From Pavona decussata (lineage: Eukaryota): a stretch of DNA of 64,000 nucleotides. Positions within the stretch are counted from its first letter, which is position 1. Each line of letters opens with the position of its first letter. The notes beneath the pieces were generated by a model. The model was not told where the DNA came from. It searched no databases and saw only the letters and a list, made by a program, of their open reading frames with translations. Location: positions 2,108,001-2,172,000 of the forward strand of contig CDRNST010000091.1 of NCBI GenBank assembly GCA_977016875.1. The letters run 5' to 3'. Made by a program: the position numbers and the translations under genes. Positions 44,357-62,300 of the stretch are shown piece by piece.

Positions 44357-47300
44357 GGCACCACCCACAGGAAATCCAAGTATCTTCAGATGCGTAGGAC
44401 ATAAGCACAGTGACAAAGTAGGCACCATCCTTAACTGTTTCGCTTTCTCGCCGGGATTCTACTTTTTGAGTCTGATGGATACTACAATGTTCTTGTGGTA
44501 TTGTTCCATGCTCAAAATTTGAAGAATACGTTCGGTGCTGTTTGTATGTAGGTGGTAGCCAACACATTTAGATGTATAAATAAGTATTGAAGAACTCACA
44601 GAAATGGAATGAATTCCCATAAGGATGGGGAAAGTGTACAGGGGTGACCTGTGATCGACTAGCATTACTTTCAGGGAGAGTAGCGATTTTTATATCTGTT
44701 TTATATGGCAGAAGCCGAAGATAACTGCTGTAAGCACAAAGGCCTTGACAGCGTCCTTGTCTGCGCTTTTATACCACCTTTTAACACAGCCCAATTGATG
44801 GTAAAAAGTACGCAAACACTTTCCAGCCTTGGAAACCTAACTTTATAATAGGAATGTTTGGTAATGTCTTGATCGACGTGTTGGTGATTGGCAAAAAGCA
44901 GATTAATTTAGAGTCAGAATCTGAATACTGTGGACACCTTTGTAAAACGGTGAAGAGAAATAAAAGATGAATTGTTTGTGAAGGAAATAGCCAGGGCCCA
45001 GTTGTTCAAAGCCCGGTTAAGCTAATCCTGGATTAACGAGAATTTTGATTCGAGTTTAATTACTAAACAATAAAGATTCTTCCAAAAGATTTTTGGCCCT
45101 CAGTTTTTGCTTCGACGTTTCTTTACCTTAAGCTCAAAATAAGCCATTAAAACCATTTTTATCGAGCGAGAGGAAAACGTCGATTAACTTCTAATCGTGG
45201 ATTAACGTTAATCGGCTTTCGAACAACCCGGCCCAGGTGACTCTTTTAGTTTCCATTTGTTCGCATTTCCTGCAGCTTGAGCTCTCATTCGATGAGCAGC
45301 TGTGGAAATTGGCAGATCATCGTTAAATTAGAGTGTCCATAACGCATTGATTCACACTGTAGCTGAAGCTATGATTAACGCGAAATTACCTTATTGTGAC
45401 ACGTTATTTTTATTTAATTACAGATAAACCTGAAGAAGAGGAAACGGATTCAGGCACCAACGGTAATAACCTTTGCCTTAATAAGTTATACGGTTAAGCC
45501 TTTTCCAAGCGACTCCTTCCCAACCTTAAAATTTTCAGAAACGTTCGTTCTCTAGGAGAGCTAAAGTTTCGCATGGGAAGTCACAAGCGAAGTGGCTTGA
45601 CTAGAGAAAGAAAAAAGGAAATTCTGTATCGGGCAGCTGGCAACTGTCTTTTATAGACGGCAGCTATAATGAAGATTACCGGCTTATCAGAATTTGAATG
45701 TTACTAAAAGACGACAGGCAAAGGAGAAGTTCTTTGGTTTACGAATGGCGCTTCTTCTTGTGGAACCTCACGGAGGTTTATTATTGTGCGTTAGAAATTG
45801 AACCCTGATAGCCCATTGGTTCCCTTCTTTTTGGGGGCTTGGAGGGAGGCCTCAGAAAAGGGGCGTGGGAAGGGGTCCCAAGATATTTCAGCTCCAAATA
45901 GAGAACATGAGAATTTCAGCGATATATTCGTGGTATAAAAATATTTTGAGATATGTTCAGAAACGTTTTATAAGTTGCTCCGATAGCAGATTAAATTTGT
46001 AGTGCAGTGTTTTAAGGTGTGTAGTGCAGAACAATTTCAAAGTAATATGTCCGTATTCACAAAAGGTATTCAATTTGTTTGTGTCGAATGTCTTTGCAAT
46101 ACAATGCAATACTTTTGTTAAGTGTTTGTGTATTTAGCATTACAGTTAATTTGTACCATTGGCTTTGATCTAAACGTAATTGATTTACCCTCAAGAAAGT
46201 CATCAAAACCTTGCCAGTTATTTTAGGTCCCCCATAAATTCTTAGGGCAATATTTGATAGACATGCCTCTTTGGAACCAACTTGGCTAACAAAGGATGCT
46301 CTGTTTATTTTATTTTGTTTTTATTTTTTTGCAAATCAGATCAAAGACCCTACTTCATTCAACCATTACCAGAAGAGGTGGAAGTTCTTGAGGGTGACTC
46401 CACTCGGTTGGAATGCCGCGTATCACCAGGAGCTGACGTAATGTGGTACATAGATGAGGAAGTGTTGCAGGAGGATGGTAGAGTCACACTTGAAAACGAT
46501 GGTGATGTTTATGCAGTTGTCATATCTCCCACGGAATTAGATGATGAAGCAGAGTACAAGTGTGTCGTACAGAATGAGTTCGGTAAGGTGTCCTGTAAAA
46601 CAGAGCTGATCGTTGAAGAAGGTGTGACCATGCCACTCATCAAGGAGCCTCTAAAGAACCTGGATGCCAGTGTAGGTGATGTTGTTAGATTTGATGTGAG
46701 GATTACAGGAGACCCAGAACCCATGGTGGAATGGTTCAAGGATGGAAAACAACTTGAAGACGAGGGACGTGTAGTCATTATTGATGATGTTGATGATAAT
46801 GACAAGGAGTTGTTTTCATTAGTGATCGAGGGTTGTCAAATGGAGGATTCTGGCACTTACAAAGTTGTAGCAATGAGCGAGGCTGGAAAAACCGATAGCC
46901 AGTGTGATTTGGTGGTTACTCGTGCCACTGTCCCACCCGAGTTTAAGGATGAAATTGAAGAGGTTTGTAGTGCATTTTATTGTTCAGTCAGGCCTCGCCA
47001 TTTCTCCTCTTCTGTTCGTCTTGCTCACAAAAAAATGTATATGAGTTAACCCTTGTGAAAATTTGAAAGCGCACTACCTTTCATTTGATCAGTAAACCAA
47101 ATTATTTCTCTTAAGATAAAGGACTGAAAGATGTAGATAATGGTTAATTTTGTCATGAAAAGAAAACTTTCTCTTCGAGTAAACTTTTGTCTAACGGTTA
47201 TTATTTTGCTCCCTGGTATCAGGTGCCTTTGGAAGGTTCCCAAGGTGACAACATAACAATGGTTGTGCATACAGGCCGCCTTCCGTCACCGACTATTGCC

Positions 47301-50300
47301 TGGTACAAAGATGAAGAACCCATCATTTCAGACTCGCATCTAGAGATCTCAGAAGAACCAGACCACTGCCAGCTGTTGGTTAAGAATGTGACGCCTGGAG
47401 ACTCGGGGACGTACAAGTGTGTTGCGTCCAGTGTCTTGGGCAGCATAACAAAGAAATTCCTTCTCAATATTGAAGGTAAGTTTAATGTGTCTTTGGGATC
47501 ACCAGTTTGTGAAAAAGTGCCAAATTGCACCTATGGAAATGATGCAACACTCCAGCTTAAGAATAACTGTGGAACCAGCAGGGCCAAGGGAAATTACTGC
47601 TCATCAACTTTCATTTAAGGTGATTCCACTGAATTGCATTGCGCATCCTTGCTGCGCATAATTTTTCGCGTCATTTAGCGTGCGCATGAGCGCGCGCACG
47701 CACAACATTGCGGGACTTCCTTGAGGTTAGGCTCGGCAGGAAAATAAATGGTCCTTTTCTTCTCAACGAGCACGGTGACCCCCATTTTTTATTCAAGGAA
47801 ATTAAAGAAAATACGACTCTCTAAGTTATATGCCAGTTTCAATAATTTTTCATTATTCAATTTCAAAAAATTTTTGTGGAATCACTACTACGATCAATTT
47901 TGGACGTTTCGCGGGAAGCGTACAACCGCTCGAATGTCCCCTATTATGCCATGGGATTAAGTTATTTAGCCACTTTATGGCGTTTTACTACAAAGTTACA
48001 GTACTGTTATAAGAAAAATGCTAGTATTTCATTGTCAGTACTAACTTTCTGGAAGTAGTGGGCACTTCTCGCTGAAGACTAGCTCTTTTAATATTGAGGT
48101 CACATGCCTAGAAAATAGTGAGATACTACAGCCCTCTAGGGTGAAAACAAGCACGGTGACCCCCTCTTTTTATTTTATTTTTCTGATGTACTAGATGTAC
48201 TTAACATCTGTAGAGATTTTCAAAACATTCTCATTACAAACGTTCTTTCGATGGAATCACCTTAAATAGCCGCCATTTGCAGTCTCACAAAACTGCCACA
48301 GAGTACTTGAAGTATAGAGTCGCCTTGTACACTTCAAAAAACTGCATCACAGGGAAGCACTGCTCAGTCAGTTTAACTGATTTCATCCAAAGACAAAAAA
48401 CCTTGTAGAGCGTAACACACAACGCAAGAAACTGCATCCGTAGTTTGGATTATTTTATGGCTAACAATGAAAAACTTTACTTTGCCACATAGGGTCAGAA
48501 CCAAGGGAAGAAAAACCTATAACCATTTCTGAGATGGCTGAAGTAGAAGCCTCAATACCCATTGAGGAAAGACCTGTGCTTGATATAACTGCACCTGTCT
48601 TCACAAAGAGGATTGATGATGTTGCTGTTGATGTTGGCGAGGAGGCACGCTTTGACGCCAGAATCCATGCTGTACCAGACCCTGAAGTTGAATGGTACAA
48701 AGGGTCACAGAAGATCTTGGATGAAGGGCGGTTTGTTCACATTGATGCACTTGAGGAAGACCTGTTCACGCTTATAATTGAACACGCTGAACCAGGTGAC
48801 TCTGGTCAATATAGGTGTGTTGCATCAAATGAAGCTGGAGAAACGACCTGTGAAGCTCAGTTGACTGTGAAAGGTACAGAGGCAGCTCCAGATACCCCAA
48901 GTGAACCAGAAATCTCAGTCCTTGATGTCGGTGAGGGTGGTGAGGTGAACTTGAATGTAACGTTTTCGGGACCCTCCAAGCCCACTGTGGAGTGGCTTAA
49001 GGATGATAAACCAGTGCGCAAAACAAGTAGACTTGACACGAAGGCCAAAGGAGACACTTACACTCTCAACATCAAAGAAGCTGTTCCTGGTGATTCTGGT
49101 ACATATACTTTCAAGGCAACCAGCCCTGCGGGGGTGACCATAAAATCTTTTGAAGTAAACGTGCAAGGTATGAGAAGTTCTTAAAGACTAATGTTGTACC
49201 GTGAAAATCCGAATATACTGGTAAACTCCTCCGAAAATAAGCTTCCCAAATATAAAGCTATCAAATCTTAGACGCAAGCATCCTTCCAATAACAAGGCCG
49301 CCCGCAGAAAAGCTTACGGACTATAAGGGCTAGCTGTTTCAAGGAACTTTTAATTGTTTGAAGCGCTTTCAATTGTTAAACCCAGTCAATTTCGCAAACA
49401 CAAACTTCTGTACTATAATAAGCCCCTCCACAAACAAACTGGCCCCGAACATAAGCCCCTAATAAGTAAGGAATGAATCAGACATTTCTGGTTTTTGATA
49501 ACCCTTGTCAAAAGGAGTTGATTTGAATGATTGCTCCGTGCCAAGGCTCTTGTCTAGCAGGAATTCCAAGCTTCCTAAAGATCTATTTGGCATAGAGAGG
49601 AATCAAATCGAATAAAATCTGTTCTTCTGCAGTGCAAGTCAGTCTTGTTGGAGTAAAAGTTTTAATGTTAAAATCGATTTGCACGGTAGACAATGACTAG
49701 AATTGCAGTCAAATTCGACGTCTTTGTGGTAAGTGGCCCAAGCAATGAATCTGAAGTACCCATATCAGTGACTGCACCTCCTTGGGCATAATTCAGCTGT
49801 TACTACTATATTTTTGATTGCCTAAGCAGCTGAGGTAATGAACAGGATCACTTCTTTTGGAAGGAAAGACAACATTTTGTCGATAACTATCGCATACAAA
49901 CAGATAGACAAGCCAAGTAAATACATTAATTAACGTTTACAAATTCTTACTCGTTAATTTTTTTTTACACAGAAAAACCTGAGCAAGGAGAACTCCCCCA
50001 TTTTATTGAACCACTGAATACTGTAGAAGTAACAGAGGGATCCAGCGCAACTCTAGAGTGTGTAGTCACAGGGAGACCAGAACCCAACATAACTTGGTTC
50101 AAAGATGACACTAGCGTGGCAGATGAAACACGATACAAGACACGATTTGATGGAGAACGCGCCACATTAAAAGTCGCAAGCACTGTACTAGAAGACGAGG
50201 GTGAATACAAGTGTGTAGCTGAAAATACTTTTGGTTCAGCAACTTGCTCGTCAGAACTTCTTGTCAATGAAGCCAATGCCAAGCCCCAGTTTGAAGAGAA

Positions 50301-53300
50301 AATGAAGCCTGTTAATGTTACGGAAGGTGAACCAGCAACATTTTCAGTGAAAGTGACTGGCAATCCCCCTCCCATCATTGACTGGTTTCGGGGCAAGGAG
50401 CAATTGGAAGATGAGGGACGAATTGGAATGGAAGACAATGAAGAAACAGGGATCTACTCGCTCACCATTAAGGACACGGTCGTGGAGGATGCTGGCATGT
50501 ACAAATGTGTAGCAATCAATGAAGAGGGTGAGGTCTCTAGCAAGGCAGCTTTGGCTGTCAAAGAGCTCATCACCGAGCCCACATTTGAAACCCAGGAAGA
50601 TCAAAGACCTGAAGAAGCTACTCCAGTGAAAGTCGGAGAAGGTGATATTGTGAGTCTTAGTGCAGTTGTCAAAGGAAAACCTCTCCCTACTGTTGACTGG
50701 TACAAAAATGATGAGAAACTGCGAGAAACTAGCCGTTTGAAGATGGATGCCAAAGATGGTGAACTCTCTCTTATAATTTTGGAAGCGAAGCCTGATGACT
50801 CTGGCCTGTACAAGTGTGAAGCAAAGAACAAGGGTGGTAAAGCTGAGAAAACCTTTGACGTCAATGTGCAAGGTGCCTTAGAAATTAAGTTACGGTTTTT
50901 TAGTTTTCCAAAACATTGTGTAGCTGACTATTGTTTTAAAAAGTTCGGTTTGCAATTGTTTACGACTTTCACCAAAGTAGGTTGTTTACAACGAGAAACA
51001 AGCAATCAGTCTAACACACCCAGCCTCCTACCACCAACCAACCAACAGAACAATTAAGAACAACAGAAACTGGATAGTGAAGACTGAATATGCCGATATT
51101 ATTTTTAAGTGGTGTTACCAGCCAAAACAAACAAACAAACAAACAAACAAAAATAAAAATAAACGAACAAAATTTCATTTAGGTATTTTTTTTTTCTCTC
51201 TAACGCCTGAATGTAGAATCCGGTATATAAGAAACACGCATTAAGCTACTTATTTTGTTGTTTATATGTTGAAGGCCAAAAACCTGAAGGTTCTGCGCCA
51301 GTGTTCACAGAGTTACTGCAGCCAGTGGAAGTTGTGGAAGGTTCTCCAGCCAAACTTCAGTGCAGACTGAGTGGTGTACCAGAGCCAAGCATCGAGTGGT
51401 TTAAAGACAGCGAGCTTGTAAAGGAAGACAAGAGAACAAAGATCCGTTTAGACGGCGAGTTGTGCAGTTTGAAGATTCTCTCAACGGAGCTTGGAGATGA
51501 GGGTGCTTACAAGTGCGTTGCCAAGAATGAGTTTGGGTCTGCCTCCTGCGCTTCGGAACTCCTAGTTAACGAGGCAAACAAGAAGCCAGAGTTCATTGAA
51601 AAGATGAAGCCTGTGAATGTGACTGAAGGAGAGGCAGCCCGCTTTGATGTCCGAGTTGAAGGTAATCCACTTCCAGTTGTGGACTGGTTCAAAGGCAAAG
51701 ACAAGATTGAAGATGAAGGACGCTATGTGATGATGGACGATGAAGACGAAGGCAGGTTTACCTTGATTGTCGAGGAGACAATTCCTGTAGACGCAGGTAC
51801 CTACAAATGCGTTGCTACCAATGAAGAAGGGCAGACATCCACCAAGGCTGCTTTAGCAGTGAAAGAGAAAATGATTGAGCCTCAGTTTACGGACGGAGAA
51901 GAAAGTGCGCCCATAAATGTGACAGATGGTGATGAGATAAGCTTAACTGTAAACGTCAAAGGGAAACCAGATCCTACTGTTGAGTGGTACAAAGATGACA
52001 AGAAGCTGAGGAAAACTAGCAGGGTGAAGATAGATGCAATTGGCGATAAGTTTTCACTGGTTATTTTGGATGTCACACCCGAAGATTCTGGCAAGTACAA
52101 ATGCGAAGCTTCCAGCAAGGCTGGCACTGCAACTCGCATGTTTGATGTAAACGTAGCAGGTATGGAGTTGGTGTTCACTTAGGCGATTTATAACTCTAGC
52201 ATAAAGAGGGTTTATAAGAACTTCGATTAAACAAAGCGGTCACATTGGAACAATCAAAACACACTGCAGAACTCTTTAACTAGAGCATAACCTTGATTAC
52301 ATGTTTTTTTTCTTCATAACTAACTGAAAAAGGAGTGTCTCGATCTTCGATTGATTAGGACATGTTGAATTCATTTTTGAGACAATTTTAAAACATAAAG
52401 AATTACTTACTCCAGGCAACGAAAAAACCGCTCAAGTTAGCAAGCTGTTTGATGGTTGAGTTGTTTTAACTAAGGAATCGCGAGGTTTTGTTGCGGAAAC
52501 TGGATCAGGAAGAAGCTTGTTCCAGACCAATGTATAGTGAATTTGATTTTTAGAGTTAATATCATATCTTGGTTTAGTTTGCCGTTTGTTCTTGTTCTAT
52601 TTCGAGGCTTTTACTTTGGTTCTAGAATATCAGCTGACAATTTTGTAATTTGTAAAACTGCCAGGTGTTATTCTTAGATGCTGGCCAATGTTTTTTTATT
52701 TGTGCAGCTAAGAGTCCAGAGGGCAAAGCACCAGAAGTAATCAGGCCTGCAGCGATTGTTGAAGTTGAAGAAGGCAAACCAGCTAGGATAGAATGCCAGA
52801 TAAGTGGGCAGCCCACACCAAATGTTGAATGGTTTAAGGACAGCGAGAAAGTGAAGGAGACGAAGCGCATCAAACCTGAAAGTGACAACGAAATATTCTC
52901 TTTGAATTTTAAGGAGACTGAACTTGACGATGAAGGTGACTACAAGTGCGTTGCTCGTAATGAGTTTGGCAGTGTGTCAACCGAAGCTGAATTGCTTGTC
53001 AACGAGGCTGGTAGCAAACCCGAGTTCGTGGAGAAAATGAAGAACGTCAACGTTCAGGCTGGAAAAGAGGCCAGGTTTGATGTGCGTGTTTCTGGGTCCC
53101 CACCGCCAGAAGTTGACTGGCTGAAAGGAGATGAAAAGATCGAAGATGATGGCCGGTTTGTCATTGTTGATGGTGAGGCCGATGGGCTTTTCTCATTGAT
53201 TATTGAGGAGGTAAAACCAGAAGATGCTGGAAAGTATGAGTGTATTGCATTCAGTGAACTGGGCGAAGCCTCTTCCAAGGCTAACCTGGCTGTGGAAGAA

Positions 53301-56300
53301 GTCCTTGTTGCTCCTGAGTTTGCTGTAGAGGCTGAGAGTGCTCCAGTCGTAGCTGAAGAAGGAGGGGATGTAACATTGGATGTTGAGTTGAAGAAAGCGC
53401 ACCCAGATCCCCAAGTAGAGTGGTTTAAGGATGACAAACCAGTTAAGGTAGATGATCATTTGGCTTTGGCTGACAAAGATGATTTGCATTCGCTGTCAAT
53501 AACAGGAGCCACCCCTGAAGATTCTGGTTTGTACATGTATAAAGCTAGCAGCAAAGCTGGTTCCATAGAGAGGACCTTTGATGTGCAGATTACAGGTATT
53601 GTTTACTTGAAGTAGCACATCCTAATAAATAATAATAAACTTTATGAACGTGCTGAAGTCATAGAGGTTTACTTGTCGGGGACGCATGTTACATTCTGAT
53701 ATGCTGAAGTACGTTCTTACAGTGTATGTTACAGATAGTATGAGTGCATAACGATGTGTTTACTTGCTTAGTTACGATGAAATGCAAATGAGTTAGTTAA
53801 AAAACAATTGTGGCAGTAGCCAATATCAGAACATGTCTATACGTTAATTGCAAGGTTTGAGATAATTACCTTTGCAAACATCGTCCTTGGTTAGGTCTTT
53901 TTGATAAATGTTGTCTTTAATGGCGTCTGTCAGAGATTGATTATTTTTCTCACCATGGGTGCATTTAAATCAGAAGCGCGGTCCAAGGGACCGTAATGAG
54001 TGTTTCCATACCTGACAGTGTCCAATCCACGATGGCCTTTGTAAATTTTATTGCCTTTTGGTGAGTGTTTTTGCTTTTTACCTTGCAGCAAAGCAACCGG
54101 AAGGTACAGCCCCTCAGTTCACAGAAACTTTACAACCAGTGGAGGTAAAGGAGGGAAGTGCAGCCAAACTCCAGTGCACAGTGACAGCTGAGCCACAAGC
54201 AGTTATTGAATGGTTCAAAGATGGAGCAAAAGTGAAGGAGAGCAGACGGGTGAAAGCAGAAAGAGATGGAACATCTGTTTGTTTGTCTTTCAAGGAGACT
54301 TTGCCTGGTGACAATGCTGAGTATAAGTGTGTGGCTACAAACGATATTGGGTCTGCCTCTTGTTCCACTCATTTAACGGTCAAGGTTTTATCTAAACCGG
54401 ACTTCAAGGACAAAATGAAAGCGGTTGAAGCAGTTGAGGGTGATTCGGCCACTTTCGACGTCCGTGTGGCTGGTTATCCTGAACCCACCGTAGAGTGGTT
54501 TAGAGGAACAACAAAACTGCAGAATGATGGGCGCTTTGAGATCAAGGAAATCAAAGAGGAAAATCGGTTCACTCTTGTAATCGGAGACGTTAAACGTGAC
54601 GATACTGGAATGTATAAATGTGTGGCGTCAAACGAAGTTGGCAAGAACACGTGCCGAGCTGACCTCAATGTGAAGGAGAGGCTGTTTGCCCCTGTATTCT
54701 CTGAGGAGCAGTCAGATGCCCCCATTACTGCGACAGTAGGCGATGAGGTGAGCCTGGATGTTACGGTCAATGGAAAACCCAAACCTGATGTTAAATGGTA
54801 CAAGGATGACAGACCACTGCGTGAGAGCAACAGGCTGGACATCAAGGCGCGAGGAGACAAATACTCTGTGGTGATTCTCGGGATCAAACCAGACGATTCT
54901 GGAGTGTACAAGTGTGAAGCAAAGAGCAAGATGGGTACTGTGACCAGGACATTTAATGTCAGAGTAGCAGGTATTTACAAATTAGTTTTCCTCCTCGTTT
55001 TAGAGTTCGAGGAAAACTGTTTTTCTCCCTTTGGCCAACATCTGTCCCTCTGTTTCATAAATGCAGTAGCCTTTAAATCATTGTGGTAATCGCACTGTTC
55101 TTTCTCTCTTTGGATTGTGTAAACAGGAAACCATCACAGTTTATGTGACGCAACGAGGAAATGTCTTATGGATGAAGGACTCTCGCTTAAATTCATCCCC
55201 AACGGAATATGAATCTTAGTATTATTCACTCAGCTGCGAGGGGCTGTCATGACAAGCCATTTTATTCTTAGTTCTTATGTATTATGGTGGTTTCTATGGT
55301 GTACCATCTCCGCCAAAAAACTAAATTGTCACCCAACATTCAGCTTAAGAGATCAACATCAGACTTTATGATGTCAACGTTGATCCCCAAGTAAATCAAG
55401 TTCCAACTTTGCAACATAACGTCCGACAACAGGAATCAACTTTCAACTTAAAAATGTGTCCTTAGAGTTTATGCGTAAATTACCGAGTTCACGAGTTTCC
55501 AACATCGGACTTTATTTTGATGTCGAAATTAGCACGGCACATTCCGACAGGAAATAGCACGGAGTGACAGGCCTGTTCGACCTCTAACAATGTAAACATT
55601 TTTGAAATGTATCCTCTTTATAGTTTTGCTCTGACAAGCACGTGTTCAGAGATTTTCCTTTTTTAAAGGAGATCAGTGGTGACTCTTTGAAGATTTCTCG
55701 TAGGAAAGGCTGGTTTTGTATTAAGTGCCATTTTTCCATCAAAACATGTTTGAGGTTGGGTGCTGATGGTTAATATTGTGTCAAGAAAGACAATGTTTGG
55801 GGGTGGTGTTGTTGGTTTTTTTTTTTTTTACTTTAATGCTCATGACCTTTCTGAAAATTTGACATCTGATAAAAATTTTTCAATCAGTTTCTTTGGGTAG
55901 CCTATAGCAAAGAGACGTCATTTAATTTTTTTTAATGTTTTCCACAAATGTTCTTTGTGAGAAGTTGCTCGTACAAATCTTAGGGCTTCGCCCTTAACGA
56001 TTTTTTTGGCTCCTTTTGGGTGGCTAGAGGAATCAAACAGCTCGTGAATGAAAAGATATTTCGGATTTCGTTTAAAGTTATTTGCTTAACGCGCAAAACA
56101 ATTTAACTTCGCTCTTGACTATTCCTTTCGACACGCGAGGCAACGCAGAGGTGGAACGTCACGCGACAAAACATGGTGACTCAAAAAAATGCGTTTCCAG
56201 GTTTTTTTCGAAAGGCTTCGCAATTGTCTGCGTGACCATGGGATTATCAAGAGACCTGGTATTATTTGGCCTTGCCCTCCTTGTATTTTATCTTGTTAAT

Positions 56301-59300
56301 CCATGACAACAAGTGTGCTTGCTTTGTCCGCTTTTTTAAGGGTTAAGTAATTGCGTCGTTTGATAGCGTTTAATGTTCGACGTTCTTTGCGTGACAAGTT
56401 TGGTTTTGGATTGGCTATTTGTATCTCCGCAATTTGTTTTTTGACCTCTTCAAGAGATGTTTCTATAGACAGTGTGACTGATGGTTGAATTAGTGGATCC
56501 CAGTTTGGTTTGATATACACTGTAGAAGGGATGAATTGTTTATTTTGCCCGTGGAAGATGTATCTGAGGCACATTCGTCTTGCAAAATGTCTGAAATTCT
56601 GCAAGAGTTTGTGTCGGACTTATTTTTGTCTCCATAACGAATGAATGTAATTCAACGTGTGAGGTCCCCAACACTTCTCGCCGGCCTGTAGGTGCCACGT
56701 GCAGCAAGCTGCAAAGAGCTATGACGAGAGCGAGGCAGTGCTACAGAATGATGTCATTTATCATATCCTATAATTACTGGCGGATTTAGGACGCAACTTT
56801 GAACTTTTTGATGTGACGACAACGTCGGACTTGAGCTAGAAAAATCCAAAAATTGCTTTACAGTTTGTCGGGATGTGCCGCCTAATTTCGACATCAAAAT
56901 AAAGTTCGATGTTAGCGCGTATTCCTTAAAAACCTTTGAAGTTGGTTTGTATCGGTATGTTGTCGAAACCCATGCACATTGTAAAGGTGAAAGTTGATTC
57001 ATGTTGTCGGACGTAGTTGGATATTGATTTACATTGCTTGGTGATGGTGGTCGTTGCTTGATCCTTGTTAGCCTGCAGTGTAAAAGCTAATAACTTCTTT
57101 TCTTTATTCCAAATTTCTCTTTACAGCCAAAAAACCTACAGGAACAGCACCAGAAATCACAAAACCTCTGGAAAATGTCACCGTTGTTGAGGGTGAACCA
57201 GCAACCCTTGAGTGCGAGCTGAAGGGAGAACCACAGCCCAACATTGAATGGTTCAGAGATAGTGAGCAGGTCAAGGAGTCCAAGCGCATTAGTCTGCAAT
57301 TCGATGGCAAGCTTTGTTCTTTGTCTTTAAAACCGAGTGAGCTTGATGATGAAGGAGAGTACAAGTGTGTTGCACGTAACGAACTCGGAAGTGCGTCGAG
57401 CACAGCGGAACTACTTGTGAATGAAAGCAACAGGAAACCAGAATTTGTAGAGAAGCTTAAAAACATCAGTGTTCAGCCTGGAGAGGAAGCGAGGTTCAAT
57501 GTGCGGGTTATTGGCTCACCACCGCCAGAAGTTGATTGGTTCAAAGGAAAAGAAAGCCTTGAAGATGAGGGTCGCTTTCTTATGGTGGATGATGTAGAGG
57601 AAGACCTGTTTTCGTTGATTATTGAAGATGCCCAACCAAGTGACAGTGGTGAGTATGAGTGCGTTGCATTCAATGAAGTTGGCGAAGTCTCATGCAAGGG
57701 AAACCTGGTTGTTGAGGAAACTCTCGTTGCACCCCAAGTTATCGATGAAGTAGAAGGTGCGGCACCCATGCTTGAAGAAGCAATCATGGCACCCAAGTTT
57801 GCTGAAGAAGGGGAAAGTGCACCAGTTGTGATCGAAGAAGGAGGTGATCTCAGTTTAAGTGCAGATGTCAAGGGACGGCCAACACCAGATGTTCAATGGT
57901 CGAAGGATGGTCAGGACTTAAAGAGCAGTGAACACTTGGATGTTGGTGAGGAGGATGGCAAACACACACTGTTGGTCAAAGGCGCTACTCCTGAAGACTC
58001 TGGGGTTTACAAGTGTCAGGCTACCAGCAAGGGAGGTGTGGCTGAAAGAACGTTTGACGTACAAGTGATAGGTACCTTTATGTTTTGTTGTTTGAAGTTC
58101 GATAGCGTACAAATGTCGCAACGTTTCTAAACTTACCACTAAGGAAAACAGTATTGGTGGGTAGAATGCGTAGTAGTTTTCACCCGAATTACCAAACGTT
58201 ATGATTTCACAGGCTCAAGAACAACTTCTACATTCACTGACACTCTGGTACCACCGTGTACCGGAAAATAGACAGTACAACAGAATAGCACTCATTTTAA
58301 ATGCCCACACACTTGAGGGATTTTTACAGGGTCAGAGATACGCCTGTGGAATTTGCAGTAATTGAGTCTGGCGTCTTCCCTTCCCCTATGCATCAACCGT
58401 AAGTAGGAATAAGTCAAGCGAAGGTAGTCAAGGTACTTTTAGTAATGGTTAATTTTCATGCCTGGTTTTAAAACTGCAGCTAAGAAACCAGAAGGGACAG
58501 AGCCAGTATTCACAGAACCTGTTCAACCAGTCGAGGTCAAGGAAGGCAGTGATGCCAGACTACAATGCACTGTCGAAGCGGAACCCAAACCCAATGTTGA
58601 ATGGTTGAAGAATGGCGTTCGCGTGAAAGAAAACCGACGGGTGAAAGTAGAAATTGACGGGAAAGCAACTTCACTGACGATCAAAGAAACCAGGACGCCG
58701 GACCAAGGAGAATACAAATGTGTAGCGACAAATGTTGTAGGGTCATCGTCCTGTGCTGCCACCTTAACAGTCAAGGCCATTACCAAGCCAGACTTCAAAG
58801 AGAAGATCAAGACAAGTGAGGTTATGGAGGGAGACACTGCGAGGTTTGATGCTCGAGTGACTGGGTATCCTGTGCCCGAGGTGGAGTGGTTTAGAGCAAC
58901 AACCAAGCTGAAAAATGATGACAGGATTGAAGTGACACAGGACAAAGATGACGATGTTTACTCACTTGTAATCAGTGACGCTAAGCGGGAAGATGCTGGA
59001 ATGTACAAATGCGTGGCTTCAAATGAAGGAGGTAACTGACGCAATATTACGTTACAGTCACCCTACGTCACGCGTGACCAGTATTTCCGAGAGTGAAATG
59101 AACATACGAATTCCTCTTTGTTAATGTCCGGCATTTGAATGGAATATTGAAAATTTCTTTGGAAATCATTCCGAAAAAGACGCGTTAAGTGGAAAAAAAT
59201 TTAAAATATTCGGTAAACATTTGTGCTTAATACTGTGATGATAAAATGAAAGAATGAAAAAAATCATAGCTTTATACGGTCAATAAACAAGGGAACTTTC

Positions 59301-62300
59301 TACGTGAACTCTGAAATCTCGCTGGCGATGTTCAAAACTGACATATAAATTTCAAAACTTTGTCACGCGTGACGTAGGTTCACTGTACCACTTTCGCTTC
59401 TTATCGGATGCTAACAGAACTTAAAGAGTAAGCAATTGTCAAACGTTTGATGGAAGCGAAATACATGTATTTGCTGGTCTTTTGACTTACACAATGTTCG
59501 AAGCTATCGAAACTCAGTTGGCATGGTATTAGATTACGCACAAATCCTCTGTTGGCGTCAGACGAGAGGCCATCGTATTAACAAGCTGTTAGACTGTTTT
59601 CAGTCCCCTGTGTTTTTATGTGATTTTCTAGATAGTATATGTTTTCCATTGGACTGCAATCATCTTGGTTTGTTGGGGACAGTGTAACCTGGGGAGAGGG
59701 CCAGAACTACCAAGGGGGCCCCTAGTCAGGTTGCTTAGCGTGGCGGAGGAGGGGAGACAACTAAAATATCTCTCTCCCCACGTCGAGCCCTCTTTGGCGC
59801 GCTCCCCAAGTTGCGCTCGTCAGGATGGCGGCAGTGCGATCGAAGCATACTACTACTACACTGTAAACAGCCCAACAAGCTGTTTTCTATTGTGTTTCTA
59901 GGTAGGCAAAATCTCCATTGCTGTTAACCCTTTCTGTTGTAGGTAAAAACACATGCCGAGCTGACCTCACCGTGAAGGAGAGGCTGTTTGCCCCTGAATT
60001 CGCTGAGGAGCAGTCGGATGCCCCCATAACAGTGTCAGAAGGTGGAGAAGTCAGCCTGGATTTAACAGTCAATGGTAAACCCAAACCTGATGTGAAATGG
60101 TACAAGGATGACAGACCACTGCGTGAGAGTAACAGGCTGGACATCAAGGCGCGAGGAGACAAGTACTCTGTGGTGATTCTCGGGATCAAACCAGACGATT
60201 CTGGAGTGTACAAGTGTGAAGCAAAGAGCAAGATGGGTACCGTGACCAGGACATTTGATGTCAGAGTAGCAGGTATTTACAAAGTTGTTCCGTAATCTGT
60301 GACTACACGGCTGGTAACAGTTACAAAACAGCATTTCCTTCGTTTCGTCTTAAAGTTCTAATGGTCTTGTTTGAAATGACCATCGCCGTGTTCATGCACA
60401 CGTCCTACAGTTTTAGTCTCCATTGTTGTATTCACATTTTACCAAGGTCATTCTTAATTAACTAGAGAGACTTGATATCTCCAACCCAAGATGCCGGATA
60501 CTCATACATGTAATACTGTCAACTCCCATTGACTGTTATTCTCACATACTTGCAGAAGATTGAAACCAGAAGCATACCAAGTTTTAGTTGGAAAGGACAA
60601 TTTTTCAAAATACTCTTCTTTTACTGAGTTGAGGATTTTATTCACTGACTCGACTTGCGACTTCCATTTTTTGAGTCAAGATTTTTTTCTTCTTATTAAT
60701 ATTATTCTTTATTTACGCACAGATTCTAATTGACAAAATGTTGAACTTACTTAACCTCAAACACCTGTGCAATTCATCGTCCTTAATAAGATTTCAAAAA
60801 CGGAGGGGGAGAGTTGGAGCGGGGGTGGGGTGGTACTTTTTTTTTTGGGAGTGAAAATTGTAAGTCCCGTAATTCTATGCGTGACTGTTGTATTTCTCAT
60901 TTCATTTCTTAGCTGAGAAGCCAGCTGGAACGGCACCACAGTTTACGCAGCCTTTAGAATCAATGGAAGTCTCAGAAGGGACAACTGTTAAACTCACATG
61001 CAGCTTGAAAGGAGTACCTCAACCAACTATTCAATGGCTCAAAGATGGAAAGCCCCTGAAAACTAGCATAAGGGTGAAGGACGAGTTTGATGGGGACGTC
61101 GCCGCTTTGGTGTTTTCCGAAGTAGAGCTTGACGATGAAGGTGATTACAAGTGCGTTGCGCAAAATGAGTTGGGTTCTGCATCTTGTACTGCGGAGCTTC
61201 TTGTGAACGAAGCTGGTGTGAAGCCTGAATTCACTGAACCAATGAAAGACATTGAGGTAGCTGTTGACGACGAAGGAAGGTTTGATGTGCGCGTATCTGG
61301 CGTGCCTAAGCCATCGGTGCAGTGGTTCAAGGGAACAAAGAAGATCGAAGATGAAGGCAAGTTCTTGTTGATGGACGATGAAGAAGAAGAAGACCTGTTT
61401 TCTCTTGTCATTGACCAAGTTGCCTCTGATGATGTCGGCACGTACACTTGCAAAGCGGCTAATGAATCTGGGGAGGTGAGCTGCAAAGCTGAACTACAAA
61501 TGCAAGAGAAGATGGCAGCTCCTGAATTTGCTGATCAAGAGGAAAGCGGCCCGATCACTGCTCAAGAAGGAGACGACGTAACCCTTAATGTTACTGTGAA
61601 AGGAAAGCCAAGCCCACAGATCGAGTGGCACAAGGACGATAAGCGTCTGAGGAAGACCAGCCGTCTGGATGTCAAAGAACGGGGAGATAAGTTCTCTTTG
61701 GTTATCTTAAAGGTGACACCTGACGATTCTGGTTTGTACAAGTGTGTGGCAAGTAGTAAGGCTGGAAGTGTTACAAGAACATTTGAAGTCAACATTGAAG
61801 GTATGTCCCAAAGGGTCATCAACCCATGCAATTTGTGATGCGATCTTAAGGACGGTTTTTAAGCACTATTCACAATCATTTCACTCTGACTTTGAAAGGC
61901 TGTGTAGTGGAAGAATGTTGCTTGGTATGTGAAGAAAAAGTGAACATGTCGGAAGACAATTGTGTGCACTCCGCTGCACTTAAGTCTTAAATTTTTCCAA
62001 AAACTATATATTCATACAACCATTGTATGTCCTTTTGATACTGCTTCCTTCTAGAGAGAGTGGAAAGTTCCCTTTGAAAGGTTGCTCCAGCTACTGTTCT
62101 TTAACACTTTTTGTTTGTGGGTTTTTTTGCGGGGGGTAGGGAGGGGGATATATTGTCAAACCTGTTGGATAAGTAATTACCGTGTAGAAAGAAAATTTTG
62201 CGGGAGTTTTATTTTGCGGATTGGCGAGTTTTTGTGGTTTGCGGGAACAAATATTTGCGGTTCGCGATGACTAAAAGTTTTGCTGGGAATTAATTTTTGC

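Follow-up and report, generated by a model that had tools for sequence, protein, structure and literature searches.

The window analysed here is a stretch of 64,000 nucleotides (nt) of contig CDRNST010000091.1 from the 602-Mb genome of the coral Pavona decussata. From about 46 kb onward its forward strand carries a row of exons coding for three I-set immunoglobulin (Ig) domains each, and in one of these triplets the second domain, Ig B, is interrupted by a 911-nt intron (59032-59942) between the exons that we number 44 and 45. We consider it probable that this intron represents a single derived gain, acquired in this triplet after the duplication that separated exon 42 from exon 44 and prior to the deepest divergence among the sampled corals, and that it is an ordinary U2-type, phase-1 intron of a giant "connectitin" gene of muscle type. 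Connectitin is a titin/obscurin-like giant protein reported for cnidarians (PMC12198301).

An additional intron splits one Ig triplet

Exons 44 (552 nt) and 45 (330 nt) add up to 882 nt, exactly the length of the uninterrupted paralogue, exon 42 (54089-54970), and joining them keeps the reading frame open across the junction (...YKCVASNEG/GKNTCRADL...). In the paralogue, Ig B (PF07679) occupies residues 104-195 and covers profile positions 1-90 in full; the intron position follows residue 184, in the stretch separating strands F and G, 11 residues short of the end of the domain. Exon 44 itself gives an I-set match at residues 8-97 and a second I-set match that is cut off. A preliminary description of this stretch had reported the same lengths and placed the intron at NEG/GKNTC within Ig B; the coordinates confirm the first statement, and the frame and the Pfam placement agree with the second. 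Searches were run exon by exon, exons 44 and 45 being joined only for the translation and for the identity counts.

The intron is in phase 1, like the other introns in this exon row. Its termini (GTAACT ... CCCTTTCTGTTGTAG, with a pyrimidine-rich 3' end) are those of a U2-type intron, as are the termini in relatives (GTAAG/A ... TTTTGACYAG). The donor in the window (59032-59037) lacks the G at position +5 that all more distant relatives have (GTAAG). The closest open reading frame (ORF) in our searches, P0030 (92% identity), likewise continues as N, that is, with GTAAY.

The intron is removed from transcripts

The joint 59031>59943, at which 911 nt bounded by GT..AG are skipped in frame, is present in Logan contigs of the runs X5 and X6, which belong to two studies. 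The joint is reported as 59029>59941 (cut +2), six letters fitting on either side. Introns 58071-58479 and 60273-60912, on either side, are likewise missing from these contigs, and for this reason we take the contigs to be RNA. RNA contigs cover 58478-59029, with exon 44 joined on both sides, and 59941-60272, with exon 45 joined to 60911. The intron-less joint was not seen in two DNA runs, X13, which carries a second species label (organism B, a congener), and X17, a coral metagenome. DNA contigs from both continue from exon 44 into the intron and on into a miniature inverted-repeat transposable element (MITE1) that lies within it, and X17 DNA also spans 59824-60151. The 911-nt stretch is a real spliced intron, with the RNA junction that the preliminary description had proposed to look for.

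The join of exons 44 and 45 recreates a strong donor-like motif, AG/GTAAAA in the window and AG/GTAAGA at four metagenome loci (L015, L016, L018 and L019); the donor of exon 45 itself, CAG/GTATTT, is weaker than this recreated motif. Such a layout is that of a recursive splice site, the use of which would remove exon 45 without shifting the frame. No joint of this type is present among those listed for the contigs, which lose rare forms. In the intron that follows exon 45, one X17 contig skips 223 nt (60581-60805), with seven other letters in between; the difference reads as an insertion or deletion between relatives, in a T-rich stretch of low complexity.

A single gain accounts for the distribution of the intron

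A word search with exon 44 alone returned 59 ORFs, from which we built a tree using the columns before the intron site only. Twenty-six orthologues of exon 44, with identities of 63-92% and from several independent assemblies or runs, form one clade with a Shimodaira-Hasegawa-like approximate likelihood ratio test (SH-aLRT) value of 98. All 26 are interrupted immediately after NE[G/A]G, the frame continuing with K, E or N, which corresponds to GTAAR, GTGAR or GTAAY. The sister clade comprises 12 ORFs, orthologues of exon 42, all of which are uninterrupted, and the outgroup ORFs are likewise uninterrupted; a single change on the tree accounts for the state of the intron. The exon-44 and exon-42 clades repeat the same deep two-way split, and one assembly is represented in each of the two paralogue clades (P0003 and P0019).

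The array itself gives a similar picture. Open frames in the 184 kb around the window contain 68 Ig F-strand motifs, and in only one, that of exon 44, does the frame close within 12 residues, in the F-G loop. This count bears out the earlier statement that no other triplet carries an intron at this position. Because of the tree and the count of 1/68, we favour a single gain over many losses.

Comparisons beyond the window place the gain well back in time. At six metagenome loci (L014-L019) the order of exons 42, 43, 44/45 and 46 is kept, and their introns, with lengths of 355, 413, 565, 632 and 644 nt, interrupt the same codon in the same phase as in the window. A preprint (bioRxiv 10.1101/391565) assigns one of these loci, Ga0126343, to the metagenome of 'Cyphastrea sp. 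2'. Between exon 44 of the window and the six loci, nucleotide identity is 75-81%, with third positions at only 0.54-0.66, near saturation. Since the same split is found in loci that approach synonymous saturation, the intron is shared by deeply separated stony corals. The introns of the relatives can be aligned with one another, and with that of the window over only some 16-20 nt beside the acceptor. Judged from these comparisons, the gain is not recent: the intron is old and fixed across the corals sampled. A presence/absence polymorphism of the kind described in Daphnia was not found among these samples, the intron being present in organism B, in the X17 DNA and in 26/26 orthologues.

We suggest that unrelated DNA was inserted at an AG/GTAAG proto-splice site in x-Gly-Lys codons, or created such a site on insertion. 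Selection would then have maintained both copies of the motif, the first because it serves as the donor and the second because it supplies the acceptor AG and the Gly-Lys codons.

Several points weigh against this reading. Present-day uninterrupted paralogues read GTT GGC AAG or GCT GGA AAG, without AG/GT. X5 and X6 are Logan contigs labelled 'RNA?', and their RNA nature is deduced from the skipping of three consecutive introns. The word search sees ORFs of at most 320 residues, and an intron-less orthologue in a longer frame could be missed by it. The taxonomic depth of the gain is based on sequences of which one carries a name, Cyphastrea, by way of a preprint, and the comparison at the DNA level is confined to stony-coral loci.

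The AGGTAA repeat at the two junctions

The hexamer AGGTAA stands at both junctions, as the preliminary description had noticed (59030-59035 and 59941-59946). This direct repeat, which keeps its register at the two junctions, measures 6 nt in the window; in L015, L016, L018 and L019 it reaches 7-8 nt. The paralogue exon reads GTTGGCAAG at the site; its NEVGKN is coded by GAA GTT GGC AAG AAC and so contains no AGGTAA.

We considered whether AGGTAA (AGGTAAGA in relatives) might be a true target-site or break-repair duplication left by the insertion of the intron and kept because both copies are functional. In its favour are the register of the repeat and its greater length in four relatives, and it fits the transposon-insertion and break-repair models of intron gain (PMC3443670). 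We nevertheless think it unlikely. The 6-8-nt repeat coincides with the splice consensus: on one side the motif is the donor consensus, and on the other it is the obligatory AG followed by the Gly-Lys codons. The donors of this gene have AG before GT in 11 of about 12 cases and GTAA in about two of 12, from which the chance of such a repeat is about 0.2-0.3 for an exon that starts with GTAA; given these donors, the repeat is not clearly beyond chance. In Drosophila, moreover, flanking repeats of at least 5 bp accompany 26% of conserved and 25% of gained introns (PMC3443670), so that conserved introns are flanked by repeats as often as gained ones. No inverted repeat joining the ends of the whole intron was found, and the unique core of the intron has no other copies. 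Beyond the hexamer, local alignment of the 60-nt intron ends with the flanking exon in six species gave nothing better than shuffled sequences (lowest p 0.03 of 12 tests), a result in which age may have erased the signal. A tandem duplication of an AGGT-containing exon segment, which would give the intron exon-derived ends, was rejected for want of any signal in these end alignments.

The conserved repeat is thus roughly what a consensus donor combined with an obligatory AG and Gly-Lys codons would give, that is, a pair of ordinary splice signals. The mechanism of insertion, whether by a transposon with target duplication, by repair of a staggered break or by tandem duplication, is no longer readable from the sequence. 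What stands of the proposal that the intron arose by insertion or duplication at a proto-splice site is the single derived gain; the junctions bear no readable footprint of a recent insertion. A more specific version of the duplication hypothesis takes the 8-nt AGGTAAGA, present on both sides of the intron in several corals, for a true relic of target-site or staggered-break duplication at the founding insertion, frozen through stony-coral history by its roles as donor and as acceptor and Gly-Lys codons; this strikes us as rather improbable. If true, it would be a rare instance of an ancient intron gain whose trace can still be read, and the gene itself would supply a sister exon that lacks the intron.

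In another triplet, the homologous position of the F-G loop (about 50524-50532) reads GAG/GTGAGG (codons GAG GGT GAG GTC), and the frame passes straight through it. This is a proto-splice site at the equivalent place that is apparently unused.

Intron loss and gene conversion

The distribution of the intron could in principle also be produced by loss, with an intron ancestral to the three-Ig unit having disappeared from every other triplet. The paralogous exons do undergo gene conversion, and conversion or repair mediated by complementary DNA can in principle erase introns. We regard this history as very improbable, since it calls for many independent losses in place of one gain: 67/68 Ig domains are without the intron, and no interruption is seen in the sister exon-42 clade or in any outgroup ORF. 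The preliminary description had named an ancestral intron lost from all paralogues as the case that would overturn its proposal; the absence of the intron from the other Ig domains, the sister clade and the outgroups disfavours that case.

The pattern of identity between the paralogues raised a further possibility, that the intron was born together with, or forms the boundary of, a conversion event linking exon 45 to the 3' portion of exon 42. One side of a break would then have been mended by copying the paralogue and the other side by filler DNA. The BLAST match between the paralogues breaks at the intron, with 68% identity before it and 91.5% after it, and exon 42 in the lineage of the window has the exon-45-type KNTCRADL after the site. 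This scenario is highly implausible in light of where the identity changes. The best change-point in the window is at exon column 677 (support interval 512-691), not at the intron site at column 552, and for the paralogue pair of L019 the support interval of 667-762 excludes the site. Change-point analysis and binned profiles both place a sharp identity step about 125 nt downstream of the intron site in both lineages. Near-identity is confined to the Ig C core, and the tract originated independently in two lineages, when the intron had long been in place. We also considered that the conversion tract had been stopped by the intron, and rejected this given that the step lies about 125 nt downstream.

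In the window, 60068-60289 and 54766-54987 share 97% nucleotide and 91% third-position identity, and the similarity extends 17 nt into the downstream introns. The corresponding pair in L019 (2249-2572 and 6078-6341) shares 92% of nucleotides and 77% of third positions. By comparison, the Ig C cores of different lineages (the window against the Cyphastrea-group loci) agree at 56-66% of third positions, with a divergence of about 16%. High identity within each genome combined with low identity between lineages argues that conversion acted separately in both. The identities point to concerted evolution of the Ig C core, with gene conversion occurring repeatedly and independently in at least two coral lineages. 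Conversion neither copied nor erased the intron. Exon 42 had been put forward as an internal intron-less control; it is indeed uninterrupted, but its value as a control is compromised by the gene conversion that is homogenising its last ~220 nt with exon 45.

Repeats and a single-copy core within the intron

Although two transposon-like repeats lie within the 911 nt, there is next to no chance that these are a disrupting insertion or assembly artefact retained in the mRNA, an explanation refuted by the exact in-frame GT..AG joints in the contigs of two runs and opposed by the presence of the intron in independent DNA of a congener and a coral metagenome and at the same codon of six other loci.

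The two repeats had been described as intact MITEs, which holds reasonably well for MITE1 and not for element 2. MITE1 is of the Tc1/mariner type by its terminal inverted repeats, TA duplication, small size and copy number. Its inverted ends are 26 nt long and 92% complementary, and the genome contains 2153 candidate copies of the family, those scored being 79-86% identical. Aligned copies have the ends CAGTC...CACTG, with TA flanks here and in L004-L006, and the window copy has a deletion of about 21 nt relative to them. Element 2 is an old, degenerate MITE-like repeat with family copies at 67-80% identity, the longest matches being at ~72%. Its family is palindromic at other loci, and its arms are weakly complementary in the window copy; its terminal 26-mers match at 19/26 positions, a level that random intron 26-mers reach at a frequency of 0.0002. 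An 11-nt direct repeat, AACAAGCTGTT, was examined as a target duplication of element 2 and rejected, being part of the near-palindromic inverted ends. Both MITE1 and element 2 are absent from the introns of L014-L019 (355-644 nt) and are later, lineage-specific insertions.

Without the two repeats (333 + 305 nt) the intron would measure 273 nt, in good agreement with the ~280 nt estimated beforehand and of the same order as the introns of the relatives. The core between them (59388-59579) found itself as its sole match in the 602-Mb genome. The suggestion that this core might be introner-like consequently failed, and an introner-like origin of the intron was rejected: the core is single-copy, and only the nested repeats have copies. 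An Rfam scan of the intron gave just two sub-threshold chance matches, within MITE1, and the idea that the intron hosts a structured RNA was rejected, Rfam giving no meaningful match.

Organisation of the region

The positions of the features discussed above are collected in Table 1. Elsewhere in the row, the upstream triplet 46261-47046 / 47148-47615 is apparently split near the start of its third Ig domain, which implies that introns inside three-Ig units occur elsewhere in the gene, at other positions. In exon 43 (57084-58127), the linker before the third Ig domain has about 20 extra residues in comparison with the other triplets (...LVAPQVIDEVEGAAPMLEEAIMAPKF), which look like a small internal duplication of the linker.

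Table 1. Features of the split Ig triplet and its paralogue, in window coordinates.
Feature	Position	Strand	Length	Basis and remarks
Exon 42, uninterrupted paralogue, three Ig domains	54089..54970	+	882 nt	three I-set matches
Exon 44, Ig A and Ig B to the F-G loop, phase 1 at both ends	58480..59031	+	552 nt	open frame, translation
Donor-side AGGTAA (AG/GTAAct)	59030..59035	+		sequence; relatives AG/GTAAG or AG/GTAAA
Intron in Ig B, GT-AG, phase 1	59032..59942	+	911 nt	
MITE1, Tc1/mariner-type (Stowaway-like), TA duplication on each side	59053..59387 (element 59055-59385)	+		inverted ends, copy number
Single-copy intron core	59388..59579	+	192 nt	genome search
Element 2, old degenerate MITE-like repeat, imperfect inverted ends	59580..59884	+		family copies, terminal match
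Acceptor-side AGGTAA (tAG/GTAAaa; GT AAA within the Gly-Lys codons)	59941..59946	+		relatives YAG/GTAAGA
Exon 45, Ig B G strand, linker and whole Ig C	59943..60272	+	330 nt	I-set match at residues 26-108
Putative gene-conversion tract, Ig C core and 17 nt of downstream intron	60068..60289, shared with 54766-54987	+		identity, change-point

Relation to known intron gains

Yenerall and Zhou (2012; PMC3443670) describe intron gain at MAG/GT proto-splice sites by transposon insertion, tandem duplication and double-strand-break repair. The coral intron resembles such gains in lying at AG/GT with the motif on both sides, in preserving the coding length exactly, and in being lineage-specific with an intron-less paralogue. 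It differs from them in being old and fixed, and in having no demonstrable donor sequence, no target duplication that extends past the splice motif and no exon-derived ends. Recent intron gains in Daphnia are likewise flanked by short direct repeats, and they are polymorphic and young (PMC4202315); the coral intron shares the short repeat of 6-8 nt with them, in contrast to its occurrence in every sample and species examined. With introners (bioRxiv 10.1101/2020.10.14.339549) it has in common that transposon-related DNA is present in a non-ancestral intron, but as a unit the coral intron is single-copy, and its repeats are nested and later. MITE1 itself, with its TA duplication, CAGT-type inverted ends, length of ~330 nt, noncoding sequence and thousands of copies, is like other Stowaway-like Tc1/mariner MITEs; there is nothing unusual about it, and the intron merely carries it as a passenger.

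Few intron gains in animals are well documented, and the coral case, polarised by a paralogue and by 67 other Ig domains, offers a textbook-style example. Since the intron is old and fixed, it cannot show how introns are born. It also carries a caution, in that flanking repeats of the AGGT type and resident MITEs are no evidence that a gain is recent. Within the corals, the intron is a shared derived character of the exon-44 lineage of connectitin.

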